Below, piece by piece: positions 2,929-50,305 of a stretch of DNA of 64,000 nucleotides. Location: the sequence record OU509535.1. One strand, given 5' to 3'. Every line of letters begins with the position of its first letter. Position 1 is the stretch's first letter. The notes under the pieces were generated by a model. The model saw only the letters and a list, made by a program, of their open reading frames with translations. It was not told where the DNA came from and did not search any database. The position numbers were made by a program, and so were the translations under genes.

Positions 2929-3022
2929 AAGACAAGTAGTAGCTTAATATGTTCAAGAGCAGCGAGCAAACACAGCATAATGGTACTCGTCTGTACAGGT
3001 TGCATTCCTGTTTACTTGTCTT
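2929..3022 (+). tRNA. tRNA-like RNA 1 (non-canonical, ~19-nt anticodon loop)
   Basis: 10-bp end stem aagacaagta/tacttgtctt; D-arm-like gcttaatatgttcaagagc; gcgag/ctcgt stem; T-arm acagg-ttgcatt-cctgt. Confidence 0.55.
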
Positions 3023-3052
3023 TGATTTCTTTTAATTCAACGAGGTTATAAT

Positions 3053-3256
3053 ATGTTTACACCAAACACATCAAATGTAGGTAAGCGTGTAGTACTGTTA
3101 GAAGATGTATCAACACTTCGTGGCACTTTCAGTAAAGGCCATGAAATGACTATCATCGGTGAAACATCTCGCGGTTGGGATCTCGAAGATGATGATGGTA
3201 ATCGCATTTTAGAAGCTGGGATGTTTGGTCATAAAGAATTTAAACTTCTTGACTAA
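3053..3256 (+). CDS. hypothetical protein
   Basis: ORF track; GAGG RBS. Confidence 0.8.
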   Translation: MFTPNTSNVGKRVVLLEDVSTLRGTFSKGHEMTIIGETSRGWDLEDDDGNRILEAGMFGHKEFKLLD

Positions 3257-3283
3257 ATGATTACGTGCTGCTAATATAAGAAC

Positions 3284-3358
3284 AAGACGGGGTGATAAAT
3301 TAACATTAACCTTAATCGATCAACAGGTGGCTGCGGTTATCATCCCGTCTTTCCTTTT
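3284..3358 (+). ncRNA. promoter-proximal 15-bp hairpin RNA candidate
   Basis: TTGACT-17-TAATAT at 3249-3277; aagacggggtgataa/ttatcatcccgtctt followed by T-rich tract. Confidence 0.45.
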
Positions 3359-3375
3359 TAACAATGAGGTTTATC

Positions 3376-3516
3376 ATGAGTAAAGATGTTCACGTTCCAG
3401 TACAAAATGGTATGTCAGCATGTGGTAAACGAGTGGATTTAACTGGTTGGGTACGTTCAATGATCACTTGTAAAAAATGCAAAAAAACCAAAGAGTATTT
3501 TGATTTGGAAAAATAA
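3376..3516 (+). CDS. small putative zinc-binding protein (46 aa, not in track)
   Basis: GAGG RBS; H..C..CKKC. Confidence 0.6.
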   Translation: MSKDVHVPVQNGMSACGKRVDLTGWVRSMITCKKCKKTKEYFDLEK

Positions 3517-3528
3517 CAAGGATTTATT

Positions 3529-3774
3529 ATGATACTATCTAAAGAAGAACAACAAATTGTTGCACAAGCAATGAGTCTTTTGCACTTAACCACTGACAAA
3601 GAAAAAGATTTATTCAATCGTCTTAAAACTGGGGTTGATACAGTTCAACGTATAAAAGAGAGTAATGAACGTAAAATGAAATTCCATGCATCACTCATAG
3701 CTATGTATGGTCCAAATGCACATTTACATTATAATGATTATTATCAATACTGTGAAAAAAATGGTTTTTGGTGA
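3529..3774 (+). CDS. hypothetical protein (MILSKEE N-terminus)
   Basis: ORF track; AAGGA RBS. Confidence 0.75.
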   Translation: MILSKEEQQIVAQAMSLLHLTTDKEKDLFNRLKTGVDTVQRIKESNERKMKFHASLIAMYGPNAHLHYNDYYQYCEKNGFW

Positions 3775-29477: not shown

Positions 29478-30035
29478 ATGATCATCCAAATCAATAGTTA
29501 TAAAACAAAAGAAGAACTGACCACTCTTATCATTAAAGCTATTCAAAAAGGGGAAAGTTATATCAAAATTCCATTAGATAAAACAAGCAATCGTAATATG
29601 GTTATTTCCCAAATTGATAAAGATTTTGATATCAATATATGCTATATGGAAGAAACCAGTACTGATATCATTTACTCAGGTACTGAATCATTTAAACCAG
29701 ACCAAATCATTACAGCAGCGGATAATTGCGTCCAACGTTATTTCAGTACTGAACCAAATAAAACAATCAGAGAACAACAAAAATATAATACACGAAATAT
29801 GCAAGAAGTAGAAAAACATAGTAAAAACTTCCCCAGTGGTATGACCGTTAAAGAACTAAAAGAATTAATTAGAGATTGGCCTGAAACCAATCAGTACGGA
29901 GAAGATACTTTAGTCTATATCAGTACTGAATCAGATACGGATTGTACTGTACATTCTTCGTGGTGTTCATCAGTAAGAACTAATGATAATGGCACACTTG
30001 TGTATGACTTGACTCTTGATACAGAACAAAGATAA
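29478..30035 (+). CDS. hypothetical protein
   Basis: ORF track; AAGGA RBS. Confidence 0.75.
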   Translation: MIIQINSYKTKEELTTLIIKAIQKGESYIKIPLDKTSNRNMVISQIDKDFDINICYMEETSTDIIYSGTESFKPDQIITAADNCVQRYFSTEPNKTIREQQKYNTRNMQEVEKHSKNFPSGMTVKELKELIRDWPETNQYGEDTLVYISTESDTDCTVHSSWCSSVRTNDNGTLVYDLTLDTEQR

Positions 30036-30140: not shown

Positions 30141-30248
30141 CAGTACTGATAATAATGAATAGGAATTGATAAGAATGATTCAGTACTAATAATAATGATT
30201 CAGTACTATTCAGTACTATTCAGTACTATTCAGTACTATTCAGTACTG
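30141..30248. repeat. phased CAGTACT array; tandem 10-mer CAGTACTATT x4 plus CAGTACTG
   Basis: CAGTACT at 30141, 30181, 30201, 30211, 30221, 30231, 30241. Confidence 0.95.
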
Positions 30249-30504
30249 ATATGCCACTAAGTCCGTTTATAAAGTCGCACCCTGTGGGCTACATTTGTAA
30301 CTATTCAGTACTTAATAATTCAATTCATCAACTATTTCAAATCTAATTACCCCATTAACTAAATCCCCAAATTATATATTAGCAAAAATCCCAGTACTAA
30401 ATCAAGAAAAATCTGGATTACCAACGAGAAAAAATCTGGATTTTAAAAATTTTGAAATGTCGTTTATAGTTCAGGAAAAAAATGAAATTATAACAAGAAA
30501 ATTG

Positions 30505-30533
30505 TTGACACGGATATGGTGCCATTATATAAT
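30505..30533 (+). promoter_or_regulatory. consensus sigma70 promoter for ncRNA candidate
   Basis: TTGACA-17-TATAAT. Confidence 0.85.
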
Positions 30534-30539
30534 GTAATC

Positions 30540-30845
30540 CTCAAGACGAGAGAATGTTCTCTCATAGAAATGCGAAGAAGCCGAGTTTATCTGTCCCTGC
30601 GTTAGTGGGCTAACATTTGAATAGGACAATACGTAGATGAATGAAAAAGGTTCAAAGGGAAGTATTTGATTCCCTGTAGTATATAGTTAATGAGTTAGTA
30701 CTGATATAGTTTTAATCATTGAGTAGTACTACTGTCGCAAAGGGAAACCTTTGGCTTCCTTGGGGAGTGATGACAGAAGGGCATTATCCTCCATATGAGT
30801 TACTGCGAATAACTCGGTAAGTTGGGTTTTGGCAAACCTCGTTTC
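30540..30845 (+). ncRNA. ~305-nt highly structured ncRNA candidate
   Basis: no + strand ORF; 5'/3' ends pair (agacgag/ctcgttt); at least eight internal helices. Confidence 0.65.
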
Positions 30846-31031
30846 AATAATAAAATAATTACAGTACTACCAATCAGTAGTACTGCTTTTAATTCAAAGT
30901 GTTTCTTTCCATAGAGAAAAGGTGCATGTAACTTGAACATGTGAACTACGGGAACAGTACTGAACAATTCCAGTACTGATTCCTCTCCAAATTTTGGATA
31001 CAATAATGCTAGGCTTCAGTTAGTACTGAGT

Positions 31032-31148
31032 GAGAATGATAATGATTCTCATTTGAATTGGATGAGAACGATTCTCATTTACTATTGAAAATGATAATAG
31101 ATTGCATTTACTAATGGTTCTCATTCGCAGATGATAATGATTCTTATT
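31032..31148. promoter_or_regulatory. tandem Fur-box-like array
   Basis: GAGAATGATAATGATTCTC (16/19 to GATAATGATAATCATTATC) at 31032 plus further boxes near 31061, 31089, 31111, 31130. Confidence 0.7.
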
Positions 31149-31281
31149 CAAAATTGATTTTTCCGATTTTTTCCATTAGTCCCCCTTCAGCGTAGGGTTA
31201 ATTTTTCCCCTGCCGAATCGGTTTTATATTTTCAAAATCTGGATTAATCATATCAGTACTAACCAAGATAAACAATACCCC

Positions 31282-31296
31282 TTTACAAATCTTTAC
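31282..31296. promoter_or_regulatory. TTTAC-N5-TTTAC (CpxR-box-like) site
   Basis: TTTACAAATCTTTAC. Confidence 0.5.
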
Positions 31297-31320
31297 AAAA
31301 AGATTCTAAATGCGAATATA

Positions 31321-31339
31321 AATGATAATGATTCTCATT
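31321..31339. promoter_or_regulatory. Fur-box-like site
   Basis: TGATAATgATTCTCA, 13/14 to 7-1-7 core. Confidence 0.7.
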
Positions 31340-31344
31340 TACAG

Positions 31345-31394
31345 TACTGAATACTTTTTCCCACGCCCTGGCGTCTCCGGTTCCTCCCGTCTAT
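31345..31394 (-). ncRNA. degenerate small non-coding unit
   Basis: minus-strand TTGACT-16-TATAAT at 31401-31428; GC-rich motif variant, no ORF. Confidence 0.35.
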
Positions 31395-31496
31395 ATAAAC
31401 ATTATACAGTACTGAAATATTAAGTCAATACTATTTTTTCAAAAAGATTAAAATAAAATACTTGCAATGCTGATATTATTATATTATAATGTTTAT

Positions 31497-31545: not shown

Positions 31546-31550
31546 TAAAT

Positions 31551-31569
31551 GAGAATGATAATCATTTAC
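31551..31569. promoter_or_regulatory. Fur-box-like site
   Basis: GAGAATGATAATCATTTAC, 16/19. Confidence 0.7.
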
Positions 31570-31615
31570 AGTACTGGACGGATTTTCCCACCCTCGGGGG
31601 TCTCTTTTTGTCTAT
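31570..31615 (-). ncRNA. degenerate small non-coding unit
   Basis: minus-strand TTGATA-16-TATAAT at 31622-31649; CCCCCGAGGGTGG. Confidence 0.35.
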
Positions 31616-31654
31616 GTAGTAATTATACAGTACTGAGATACTATATCAAGTCTC

Positions 31655-32410: not shown

Positions 32411-32414
32411 TTGA

Positions 32415-32439
32415 ATGAGAATGAGAATGATTTGCATTT
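32415..32439. promoter_or_regulatory. Fur-box-like site
   Basis: TGAGAATgATTTGCA preceded by extra AATGAG hexamer. Confidence 0.6.
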
Positions 32440-32444
32440 ACTGT

Positions 32445-32494
32445 ACTGAATATATTTCCGCACCCTTTTGGGCTTTTCGATTACTTTCTACTTG
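32445..32494 (-). ncRNA. small non-coding unit (degenerate copy)
   Basis: minus-strand TTGCAT-16-TATACT; CCCAAAAGGGTGC. Confidence 0.45.
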
Positions 32495-33053: not shown

Positions 33054-33665
33054 ATGAATGTTATCGATACCATCTATTCTAAATCTTTCGATGAACTGAA
33101 TGCAGAGCAGAAAGAAAAAGCAATTGATATTATGCGGGATCTGGAACGCCACGATTCAGATCCATTCTGGGCACAATTAATTAATGAAGATAAACGCGAA
33201 TTAATGGATAATGAATATGGTTTTACTGATACTGTAATTCATTATAGCGGCTTTTGCTCACAAGGCGATGGGGCGTCAATTAGTACTGAATCAATCGACG
33301 CCGAGACGTTTTTACGCAAAATTAAAGCATGGTCGAAATTCCGTGTATTGCATAAACATTTCAATGATGGTAATATTACATTAAAGATCGCTCGCAACGA
33401 TCATCGTTATTCTCATGAAAATACCGTTTATGGTGTGGTGGATCTGGACTACGGCACTGAATTCACTGCTAAACAGGAAGAGAAAGCGGAAGAACTTGAA
33501 ACGCTTTTGACTGAAACTATTCGTGATCTTTCACGCCAGCATTATCAGGTTCTGAGCGATGAAAACGATTATCAAAATAGTGATGAAGCATTGATTGAAT
33601 CGATTAATGCAAATGATTATAATTTCAAAGTGGATAGTACTGGTAACGTATTGGGGTTAGCGTAA
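33054..33665 (+). CDS. conserved phage/ICE protein of the family often labelled antitoxin of toxin-antitoxin stability system
   Basis: YSGFCSQGDGAS, RYSHENT, YQNSDEALIESINANDYNF motifs recalled from that family; function unverified. Confidence 0.6.
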   Translation: MNVIDTIYSKSFDELNAEQKEKAIDIMRDLERHDSDPFWAQLINEDKRELMDNEYGFTDTVIHYSGFCSQGDGASISTESIDAETFLRKIKAWSKFRVLHKHFNDGNITLKIARNDHRYSHENTVYGVVDLDYGTEFTAKQEEKAEELETLLTETIRDLSRQHYQVLSDENDYQNSDEALIESINANDYNFKVDSTGNVLGLA

Positions 33666-50115: not shown

Positions 50116-50199
50116 GAACAATTTATACTATTCTGTACACTATTCTGTACATCATTCTGTACTGGAACAATTTATACTATTCTGTACACTATTCTGTAC
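50116..50199. repeat. 35-bp direct repeat x2 (period 49) built from TATTCTGTAC units
   Basis: gaacaatttatactattctgtacactattctgtac at 50116 and 50165. Confidence 0.9.
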
Positions 50200-50305
50200 T
50201 ACACTAATTGAAATTCATGGATATAAAACCCTTGCCTCTTCAATAAAAGTGTGCTATGATGTAATTAATATGTGTGTTTCTATTATGTGAAATTATGGGT
50301 ACAAA

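Follow-up and report, generated by a model that had tools for sequence, protein, structure and literature searches.

The 64,000-nt window analyzed here, taken from sequence record OU509535.1, belongs to a Klebsiella jumbo phage of the RaK2/K64-1 type (genus Alcyoneusvirus). From position 30505 onward it carries a consensus σ70 promoter with no evident open reading frame (ORF) behind it, which raises the question of what this promoter serves. An initial annotation had proposed that the ~305 nt ending at 30845 specify an undescribed large structured phage RNA, closed into a single multi-helix fold and possibly containing a switch. Our analysis indicates that the locus is likely to be a genuine promoter-driven non-coding transcription unit. 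More tentatively, and with less than even confidence, we favor the reading that it encodes an early, self-contained non-coding RNA (ncRNA), the first unit at the left end of the direct terminal repeat (DTR), which acts as RNA in the take-over of the host. The promoter, the lack of ORFs, the local conservation, the strand bias in folding, and the absence of a match in Rfam or the literature searched all fit an undescribed phage ncRNA. The closed fold and the switch do not survive comparison with relatives.

A conserved promoter precedes sequence without coding capacity

The promoter (30505–30533, + strand) consists of TTGACA at 30505–30510, a 17-nt spacer and TATAAT at 30528–30533. It lies 245 bp from the DTR left end and matches the consensus at 12/12 hexamer positions, just as the initial annotation had described it. 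The comparison set comprised nine Alcyoneusvirus sequences, seven from phages and two from metagenome contigs. Neither hexamer varies in this set while five spacer positions do, as would be expected of a working promoter. Over 30400–31000, the window is a 100% match to one Klebsiella pneumoniae phage assembly and is 87–95% identical to K64-1, RaK2, Muenster, KP13-7, RCIP0023 and phiKp_21, all Alcyoneusvirus phages with genomes of ~346–358 kb. A search for divergent Alcyoneusvirus copies yielded only RaK2 itself from IMG/VR and two near-identical contigs from a metagenome scan.

Downstream of the promoter, all reading frames on both strands contain stops. ORFs of ≥30 aa start with TTG only, and they are broken in relatives by frameshifting indels of 1–2 bases at 30568, 30681–82, 30713 and 30796. 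G+C content is 0.40 in 30541–30845, compared to 0.28 upstream and 0.34 downstream, and the earlier description of this stretch as ORF-free and richer in G+C is therefore borne out. Most related records leave the region unannotated. The K64-1 RefSeq record places four 'hypothetical proteins' of 63–132 nt (gp402–gp405, at 3017–3531, corresponding to about 30418–30930 of the window) over the promoter and the candidate RNA. Given the frameshifting indels among relatives, the four annotations are probably spurious.

The sequence behind the promoter is also better conserved than anything else in its neighborhood. In 100-nt bins, identity to relatives is 96–97% for 30401–30700, versus 63–99% (mostly 75–95%) in the other bins, flanking genes included. 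The few differences within 30541–30845 fall in predicted loops or bulges, in predicted stems as changes of the G-U type, or at positions that break non-conserved helices; the single-base differences within predicted stems are mostly from G-C or A-U to G-U. By the rules of base pairing, substitutions of this type are tolerated by the + strand RNA only.

The unit probably ends at a bidirectional hairpin

The initial annotation set the 3′ limit at 30845, but a terminator-like hairpin further downstream makes a limit of ~30893 more likely. This hairpin (30862–30894, stem 30862–30885) is built from two AGTACT palindromes. Its 9-bp stem contains four G-C pairs, is invariant in the nine sequences and has a pair probability of 0.70. 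Its + strand tail reads CUUUUAAUU and its – strand tail AAUUAUUUUA, and a terminator scan picks up the hairpin as terminator-like in either direction. Pointing toward it is a convergent σ70 promoter on the – strand (TTGACT-16-TATAAT, 31401–31428), in which the palindrome CAGTACTG abuts the –10 element. A second leftward near-consensus copy lies at 31622–31649, and a homologous leftward promoter is found in the Asteriusvirus phage fEgEco12 at ~1345–1390.

Because a bidirectional terminator-like hairpin is present and leftward promoters are aimed at it, we place the unit at ~30540–30893 of the + strand, which is probably a better estimate than an end at 30845. The predicted transcript is thus ~354 nt long, with its 5′ end set by promoter geometry and its 3′ end by the hairpin. 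The hairpin can be read as a bidirectional stop between two convergent ORF-free units. On the other side of it, transcription from the leftward promoters (31428–31401 and 31649–31622) would give a ~500-nt minus-strand transcript without ORFs (30895–31428) that converges on the same hairpin. The next + strand genes have consensus promoters of their own. It is because of the bidirectional hairpin, the convergent promoters and these separate promoters of the next genes that we favor a stand-alone unit over the leader of an mRNA.

Local hairpins recur among relatives

Folded in silico, 30540–30895 has a minimum free energy (MFE) of –99.4 kcal/mol, with a z score of –3.74 against shuffled sequences; for 30540–30850, the z score is –2.6. 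The + strand folds better than the – strand (mean –80 versus –67 kcal/mol). As a measure of helix support, we averaged ensemble pair probabilities over the nine Alcyoneusvirus sequences.

All of the following elements are on the + strand. A 5′ hairpin, GAGAGA-AUGU-UCUCUC (30548–30563), and a second hairpin, AGGGAA/UUCCCU (30656–30675), each have a mean pair probability of 0.95. The first shows one change from G-C to G-U, in phiKp_21, and the second combines an invariant stem with a variable loop. Next comes a long imperfect central hairpin (30676–30732), predicted in MFE folds and with pair probabilities of 0.5–0.73, which contains two AGTACT motifs (at 30696 and 30724). Its substitutions and indels are confined to the loop and bulges, and it is a possible RNase III-type duplex or pair of protein-binding sites. 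A CUGUC/GACAG helix (30732–30776, pairing 30732–36 with 30772–76) encloses two small hairpins. In phiKp_21, a clean 30-nt deletion (30737–30766) removes exactly these two inner hairpins and leaves CUGUC-GUGAU-GACAG. An alternative 12-bp hairpin, UUGGGGAGUGAUG/CAUUAUCCUCCAU (30760–30794, mean pair probability 0.66), competes with the CUGUC/GACAG helix and sequesters a CCUCC motif at 30788–30792. Ensemble pair probabilities also support a CAAAGG/CCUUUG helix. The 3′ part of the unit contains the hairpin GAGUUA-CUGCGAA-UAACUC (30797–30815), a small GGUU/AACC hairpin followed by an AACCUC motif (30825–30840) and, just 5′ of the terminator-like hairpin, a 16-nt A/U-only stretch (30846–30861) that is unpaired in the predicted fold.

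Many of the helices listed in the initial annotation stand up to this comparison. Wherever they occur among the relatives, gagaga/tctctc, tgtcc/ggaca, aggga/tccct, ctgtc/gacag, aaagg/ccttt, cttcc/gggag and gagtta/taactc keep their pairing. Two others fare less well, with gttag/ctaac broken in 7/9 sequences and the last pair of ggttt/aaacc in 8/9. The proposed pairing of the ends (30544–50 with 30838–44) needs a GTTT that is unique to this window, and its 3′ strand is absent from the other eight sequences. The long-range pairing ccgagtt/aactcgg, suggested as a pseudoknot or switch, runs into a C-C mismatch in 8/9 (AACTCCG). With the closing and long-range helices peculiar to this one sequence, the single closed ~305-nt fold has to be abandoned.

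Some further properties of the RNA were considered. CCUCC is locally enriched, with 2–3 copies per RNA versus 7 in the whole 64 kb, and we asked whether it might mimic the anti-Shine-Dalgarno sequence. Most copies are predicted to be paired with nearby GGUGG or GGGGAG, and the motif is absent from the Munch group of phages, so this is a weak idea only. An internal duplication of the RNA was rejected, as an alignment of its two halves is no better than alignments of shuffled sequences (93/500 reach the score). Within the window, a search for antisense targets found only 12-mers based on AGTACT.

A related candidate RNA in Asteriusvirus shows covariation

Coliphages of the genus Asteriusvirus (the 121Q, PBECO4 and fEgEco12 group) carry a comparable unit. 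We defined this left-end RNA, which is unannotated, from fEgEco12 399–565 and described it by a covariance model, R1, whose P1 hairpin has the loop CUGCGAA or CCGCAAA on a covarying stem. Restriction digestion has confirmed the termini of fEgEco12 (PMC13070987). Position 1 of the fEgEco12 record is the DTR left end, the first annotated gene follows at 1689, and a promoter, TTGACT-16-TATAAT, lies at 366–393. The ~167 nt of 399–565 fold with a z score of –3.98 into four hairpins: P1, with an extended stem and a CUGCGAA cap; P2, which is CUGUC-GUGA-GACAG; P3; and P4, made of two CAGUACUG palindromes (CAGUACUG..CAGUACUG) and followed by AUUUUAAUC. In all, 36 phage records carry the element over ≥80% of its length at 79–100% identity.

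When nine representatives were realigned to the covariance model, 93% of cells were paired, versus 21–55% with slid partners. Six pairs (13 cells) change on both sides, and 0/500 column shuffles reach the observed covariation score. The closing pair of P2 shows a compensatory change from C-G to A-U. Covariation is thus positive in Asteriusvirus; the corresponding result for Alcyoneusvirus is uninformative, as discussed below.

The two RNAs resemble each other in several ways. Both lie ~250–400 bp inside the DTR left end, directly after a consensus σ70 promoter. Both contain a GAGUUR-CUGCGAA-YAAYUC hairpin, a CUGUC/GACAG helix (with a 30-nt insert, and upstream of P1, in the window) and an AACCUC motif, and both units are predicted to end at a hairpin of two CAGUACUG palindromes followed by UUUUAAU. 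The promoter, these shared elements and, beyond them, ~500 bp of homologous leader are collinear in the two. The P1 hairpin of the window (30797–30815) matches 16/19 bases of fEgEco12 409–427, including one compensatory pair (A-U to G-C). In the two-genus P1 alignment, both partners change in 4/6 pairs, and pairing holds in 87.5% of cells compared to 29–54% in slid controls. The CUGUC-GUGAU-GACAG of phiKp_21, which lacks the 30-nt insert of the window helix, resembles Asteriusvirus P2. Two helices of the initial annotation, gagtta/taactc and ctgtc/gacag, recur in another genus at the same genomic position with compensatory changes. A search of the whole 346-kb K64-1 genome with the Asteriusvirus-only model found its best match at exactly this locus (21.1 bits). 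R1 finds nothing convincing in the genomes of Xanthomonas phage XaC1 and Serratia phage BF.

There are also differences. The Asteriusvirus RNA is half as long (~167 versus ~354 nt), and its promoter has CAGTACTG in the spacer, which the window promoter lacks. The 5′ ~240 nt of the window unit have no counterpart in it. Homology between the genera is a matter of short elements and position.

Behind the RNAs of Asteriusvirus and the Munch group comes another hairpin, CCACCAGC-loop-GCTGGTGG (L012 577–597; L013 485–505). Most phages have TTGTG in the loop, but vB_Ec-M-J has the reverse complement, CACAA, and fENko-Kae01 has TTAAG, which suggests that the loop has been flipped by recombination between the arms.

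The unit lies at the left edge of the terminal repeat

The initial annotation had placed the RNA at the start of a 'central block' of the window. This block is the DTR, ~20 kb long and starting at ~30260, and the RNA candidate lies at its left edge. For Muenster, PhageTerm predicts a terminal repeat of 20,030 bp at the start of the record, in which the homologous stretch is 168–755, and Muenster position 1, the predicted start of that repeat, aligns to window position 30260. Three other observations support the boundary. The ClpP-like head protease gene found upstream of the locus sits ~2.1 kb from the right end of the Muenster record. G+C content rises from ~0.30 to 0.34–0.38 between ~30 and 50 kb, then drops again. 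In one wastewater sequencing run (X3), depth is 4–9 to the left of ~30200 and 15–30 to the right, a step of about twofold. On the basis of the Muenster alignment, G+C content and the depth step, the first bases of the DTR (30260–30299, + strand) are the predicted physical left end of the virion DNA.

This position, if not the sequence, appears to be kept more widely. Two further genera have the same layout of a promoter and a short ORF-free unit, without recognizable sequence similarity. In fENko-Kae01 and Munch, the promoter lies at ~331–359 from the end. In Pectobacterium phage CBB, TTGACG-17-TACTAT (294–322) is followed by ~120 nt and then a terminator-like hairpin. The junction is not conserved in Xanthomonas phage XaC1 or Serratia phage BF, in which we followed synteny by means of the ClpP-like head protease.

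A proposed early RNA and the evidence that weighs against it

In the reading we favor, host σ70 RNA polymerase would start at ~30540 from the consensus promoter, close to the DNA end that is taken, by analogy with T7 and T5, to enter the cell first. It would transcribe ~350 nt of protein-free, hairpin-rich sequence and stop at the bidirectional hairpin (30862–30885) and its short U tract, where the convergent leftward unit would also end. The product would act as RNA rather than as the leader of a gene, most likely in host take-over. Its partner might be a nuclease or RNA-binding protein of the host, or a host or phage transcript with which it base-pairs, at a stage when no phage protein has yet been made. 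The ends of the transcript, the first entry of the left end, accumulation of the RNA and any action in trans are all things we infer. Because the promoter is conserved, coding capacity is lacking, conservation is local, changes in stems are G-U-compatible and a homologue covaries, we argue that selection has acted on the + strand RNA and not simply on the act of transcription.

A number of observations weigh against this reading. Within Alcyoneusvirus, 0/60 pairs change on both sides and shuffles equal the observed values; because the sequences are so similar (~97% identical), this result is uninformative rather than negative. The minus strand likewise beats its own shuffles (z –2.84), with an absolute energy that is ~13–19 kcal/mol weaker. 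Predicted global folds differ among near-identical relatives, and only three short hairpins recur in at least 8/9 MFE folds. The global multi-helix layout predicted here is thus not robust, and the structure proposed for the 5′ two-thirds comes from thermodynamic prediction. Those 5′ ~240 nt have no homologue outside the genus, whether in other phages, in E. coli genomes (no blastn match of the 5′ domain in 5,426 of them, for which reason we rejected a host origin of this domain) or elsewhere in the window. R1 scores the Alcyoneusvirus loci weakly, at 17–26 bits, and similar chance matches occur elsewhere in the window; its match to the unit itself (30758–30894) is weak, at 17.7 bits and an E value of 0.1. 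In the window, the CUGUC helix lies upstream of P1, the reverse of the Asteriusvirus arrangement. For the equivalent segments of the Munch group and CBB, folding is no significant improvement on shuffles (z –1.2 and –1.5). At 4 U, the tract behind the terminal hairpin is short, and in divergent members of Asteriusvirus it is interrupted (AUAUUAAUC), because of which termination could be leaky. Conservation of the AGTACT motifs within the unit might instead be at the level of DNA, as sites. Finally, public 'RNA' runs that contain the sequence are wastewater libraries only, with low and patchy coverage over the whole 6 kb. These reads look like phage virion DNA rather than transcript, because coverage is patchy across the 6 kb and shows a twofold step at the DTR edge.

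Alternative explanations

The alternative that survives best, unlikely as we think it is, makes the locus a cis-acting leader, the 5′ part of a longer early transcript that carries either processing sites for RNase III or RNase E, as in T7, or an element for antitermination of the put or nut kind, as in HK022 and lambda, which would modify the polymerase and carry it past the many hairpins of the early region. The unit does sit directly after the first early promoter, and read-through is plausible given a U tract that is short and, in some relatives, interrupted. The imperfect duplex at 30676–30732 is long enough for RNase III, and the shared hairpins have short stems with GNRA-type loops (GUGA, GCGA/GCAA), not unlike boxB. 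Yet there is no ORF for ~650–900 nt downstream, the genes that follow carry their own consensus promoters, and the convergent promoters and two-strand terminator-like hairpin separate the unit from downstream sequence. The order of the shared hairpins differs between genera, which is unexpected for a put-like two-hairpin unit, and no boxA-like element was found by eye. Early transcripts from T7 A1–A3 begin at strong host-polymerase promoters a few hundred bp from the first-entering end and open with a structured non-coding leader of several hundred nt. However, T7 leaders are the 5′ part of a polycistronic mRNA from which RNase III releases them, whereas the unit in the window is closed by a terminator-like hairpin and convergent promoters and has no gene in the ~650–900 nt that follow.

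The next alternative is that conservation reflects DNA-level sites: proteins specific for AGTACT or CAGTACTG and for the other repeats would settle on this region near the terminus, for purposes of end recognition, packaging or control of early promoters, and its transcription would be incidental. We consider this rather improbable. It has in its favor that CAGTACTG occurs 101 times in the window versus 0.6 expected and sits in the spacer of ~26 near-consensus DTR promoters, that the four AGTACT copies of the unit form its two longest hairpins, that the non-transcribed 30401–30500 is conserved as well as the transcribed part, and that the minus strand also beats its shuffles in folding. The conserved stretch (30540–30800) is, however, much longer than the AGTACT sites and mostly free of repeats, and the G-U-compatible substitutions and better folding of the + strand point to RNA. 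Nor do protein-binding sites readily account for the compensatory changes in P1 and P2, neither of which contains AGTACT.

A replication origin near the DTR left end seems to us more doubtful still. Here the promoter-driven transcript would form a persistent R-loop in the A/T-only stretch and prime the leading strand, as at oriF, oriG and oriE of T4, and the repeats would be iterons. The order of elements is right (a strong early promoter, a structured RNA and the 16-nt pure A/T stretch at 30846–30861), short repeat arrays surround the unit (the 10-bp tandem array, AAAAATCTGGATT ×2 and the paired AGTACT sites), and these phages have T4-like replication genes (PMC5259590). That position is kept across genera while sequence diverges would also fit a locus where transcription matters more than sequence. 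The likeness to the T4 origin transcripts (the oriF/oriG R-loops and the oriE RNA) takes in the promoter (early or middle), the shortness of the transcript, the A/T-rich stretch, the short repeats nearby and the T4-like replisome. Against this, the hairpin covariation in the sister genus Asteriusvirus indicates selection on RNA structure beyond the needs of a primer, and is better explained by an RNA that folds. We identified neither an origin-binding protein nor a cluster of DnaA boxes, and there is no turning point of GC skew at the locus, although this last is weak evidence since skew in such phages is dominated by the direction of transcription.

It is very improbable that the locus encodes one or more very small proteins. 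The main candidate, a 22-codon minus-strand ORF running from 30790 to 30722, has a GGAGG 3 nt before its ATG and two in-frame indels (30 nt in phiKp_21, 3 nt in Muenster); but this spacing between Shine-Dalgarno and start codon is too short, all three substitutions are non-synonymous and two of them radical (R to W, P to Q, V to I), the ORF is antisense to the only strong promoter and lies beyond the terminator-like hairpin from the leftward promoters, and all other small ORFs are broken by indels in relatives. A diverged member of a known family (RNase P RNA, 6S RNA, tmRNA, phi29-type pRNA, a riboswitch or a ribozyme) can be dismissed almost entirely, the short RNase P RNA echoes noted in the initial annotation being outweighed by the negatives of Rfam 15 for the window, for 30505–30895 to an E value of 10 and for the related leaders, and by that of ARAGORN for the window.

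Comparison with known RNAs

The Rfam 15 scan gave no match in the 64-kb window at gathering thresholds, and none within 30505–30895 at E values up to 10; the families covered include RNase P RNA, 6S RNA, tmRNA, pRNA, GOLLD/ROOL, riboswitches and ribozymes. No Rfam family matches the locus. Rfam likewise found nothing in the downstream leader, nor in the Asteriusvirus and fENko-Kae01 leaders scanned, and ARAGORN found 0 tRNA or tmRNA genes in the window.

The pRNA of phi29 (RF00044) is a structured RNA of ~170 nt whose early promoter adjoins the left end of the linear phage genome. Its family has no Rfam match in the window, and we see no hint of ring formation here. The phages differ as well: those of the phi29 type have protein-primed DNA and a pRNA-dependent motor, and RaK2-like phages have a T4-like terminase (PMC5259590). 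Hfq-dependent small RNAs of enterobacteria offer another comparison, as they too are stand-alone σ70 units with an A/U-rich single strand before a terminal hairpin and U tract. The RNA of the window is much longer than most of these, has only 4 U in its tract, and no seed or target was found for it.

Other terminal repeats offer parallels. The Pseudomonas jumbo phage PA5oct has two highly transcribed ncRNAs in its DTR (PMC7318152), and three putative small ncRNAs were identified by RNA-seq in the terminal repeat of phage K (PMC9241854). Like the unit described here, ncRNA001 and ncRNA002 of PA5oct are ORF-free (236 and 451 nt), and the jumbo phage whose long DTR contains them has ties to the RaK2 group (PMC7318152). 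They differ in lying 8 and 22 kb into a 39-kb DTR rather than at its left edge, in having no known promoter reported, and in being supported by RNA-seq (PMC7318152), whereas our unit is predicted from sequence. In DNA sequence, they are reported to be similar only to isolate MIJ3 (PMC7318152). In the literature we searched, there is no description of the RNA in the window, of its Asteriusvirus relative or of their fixed position at the DTR edge. Phage ncRNAs in terminal repeats are thus a known kind of element, of which this RNA is plausibly a new and undescribed example.

Repeats and genes around the unit

Immediately outside the DTR left boundary, at 30200–30250, lies a tandem 10-bp repeat, TCAGTACTAT ×5 (repeat family D1); the same array can also be given as five tandem 10-bp units of TATTCAGTAC. 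A similar tandem 10-bp array of the TATTCTGTAC type occurs at 50125–50200, just before the right boundary of the DTR. The arrays at both boundaries are candidate recognition or cutting signals for making the terminal repeat.

Two direct repeats of AAAAATCTGGATT, 23 bp apart (30407–30442, + strand; repeat family D15), lie upstream of the promoter and are invariant in seven relatives. The A/T-rich tract that follows them resembles an UP element. A related element, AAATCT..AAAAATTTTGGAGTAC, is present in the leaders of fEgEco12, fENko-Kae01 and CBB.

The promoter at 30505–30533 is unlike ~26 other DTR promoters in lacking CAGTACTG in its spacer. In those near-consensus σ70 promoters, the palindrome fills the spacer and abuts the –10 element (TTGACA-N8-CAGTACTG-TATAAT); random positions would give 2.9 ± 1.8 such cases, and nine of the promoters match the consensus at 12/12. 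Copies of CAGTACTG are densest at 30000–50300, and the leaders of Asteriusvirus, the Munch group and CBB are likewise full of the palindrome. It has the look of an operator that forms part of the early promoters. We found no description of it in the literature searched.

In the leader downstream of the unit, Fur-box-like repeats (E. coli consensus GATAATGATAATCATTATC) cluster at 31027–31160, 31313–31342, 31546–31573 and 32412–32439. Three copies have ≤3 mismatches, versus 0.13 expected, and all are in the ORF-free leader; similar GAGAAT/GATAAT repeats occur in the leader of fENko-Kae01. Such boxes could titrate Fur or make early transcription iron-responsive. A module of ~59 nt is present three times (31319–31377, 31546–31604 and 32418–32476; family D4); besides a Fur-like box it contains TTTACAGTACTG and a small G+C hairpin, TTTTCCCACGCCCTGGCGTCTC or a variant of it. 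By eye only, the hairpin part (TTCCCAC..GGCG/GGGGG) resembles type I-E enterobacterial CRISPR repeats; there is no Rfam match there. The early region of the DTR also contains, at 33054–33665, a homologue of the YeeU-like (CbeA-type) antitoxin, so annotated in Muenster and K64-1, which is likely an anti-defense or host-manipulation gene.

Implications

Jumbo phages of the RaK2, 121Q and K64-1 group are under development for therapy against Klebsiella and E. coli, and yet most records show nothing in the first kilobase of the genome, while others, such as the K64-1 RefSeq, fill it with spurious ORFs of tiny size. Even if the RNA proved inert, the mapped terminus, the promoter, the bidirectional stop and the convergent unit would improve annotation, and the locus would still offer a strong, compact and natural promoter-terminator cassette. 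One may speculate further, though we think it unlikely, that at least four RaK2-like genera reserve the first unit at the DTR left end, taken as the first-entering end, not for a protein but for a structured, fast-evolving, host-genus-specific RNA, made by host polymerase within seconds of DNA entry, that disarms or re-programs a host factor (a nuclease, an RNA chaperone or a defense system) before phage translation begins. If the RNA is indeed the first to be expressed, the search for what these phages do first in host take-over or anti-defense would have a concrete candidate. The RNA would also provide a new family to curate and a clean system in which to ask what an infecting genome does before translation.

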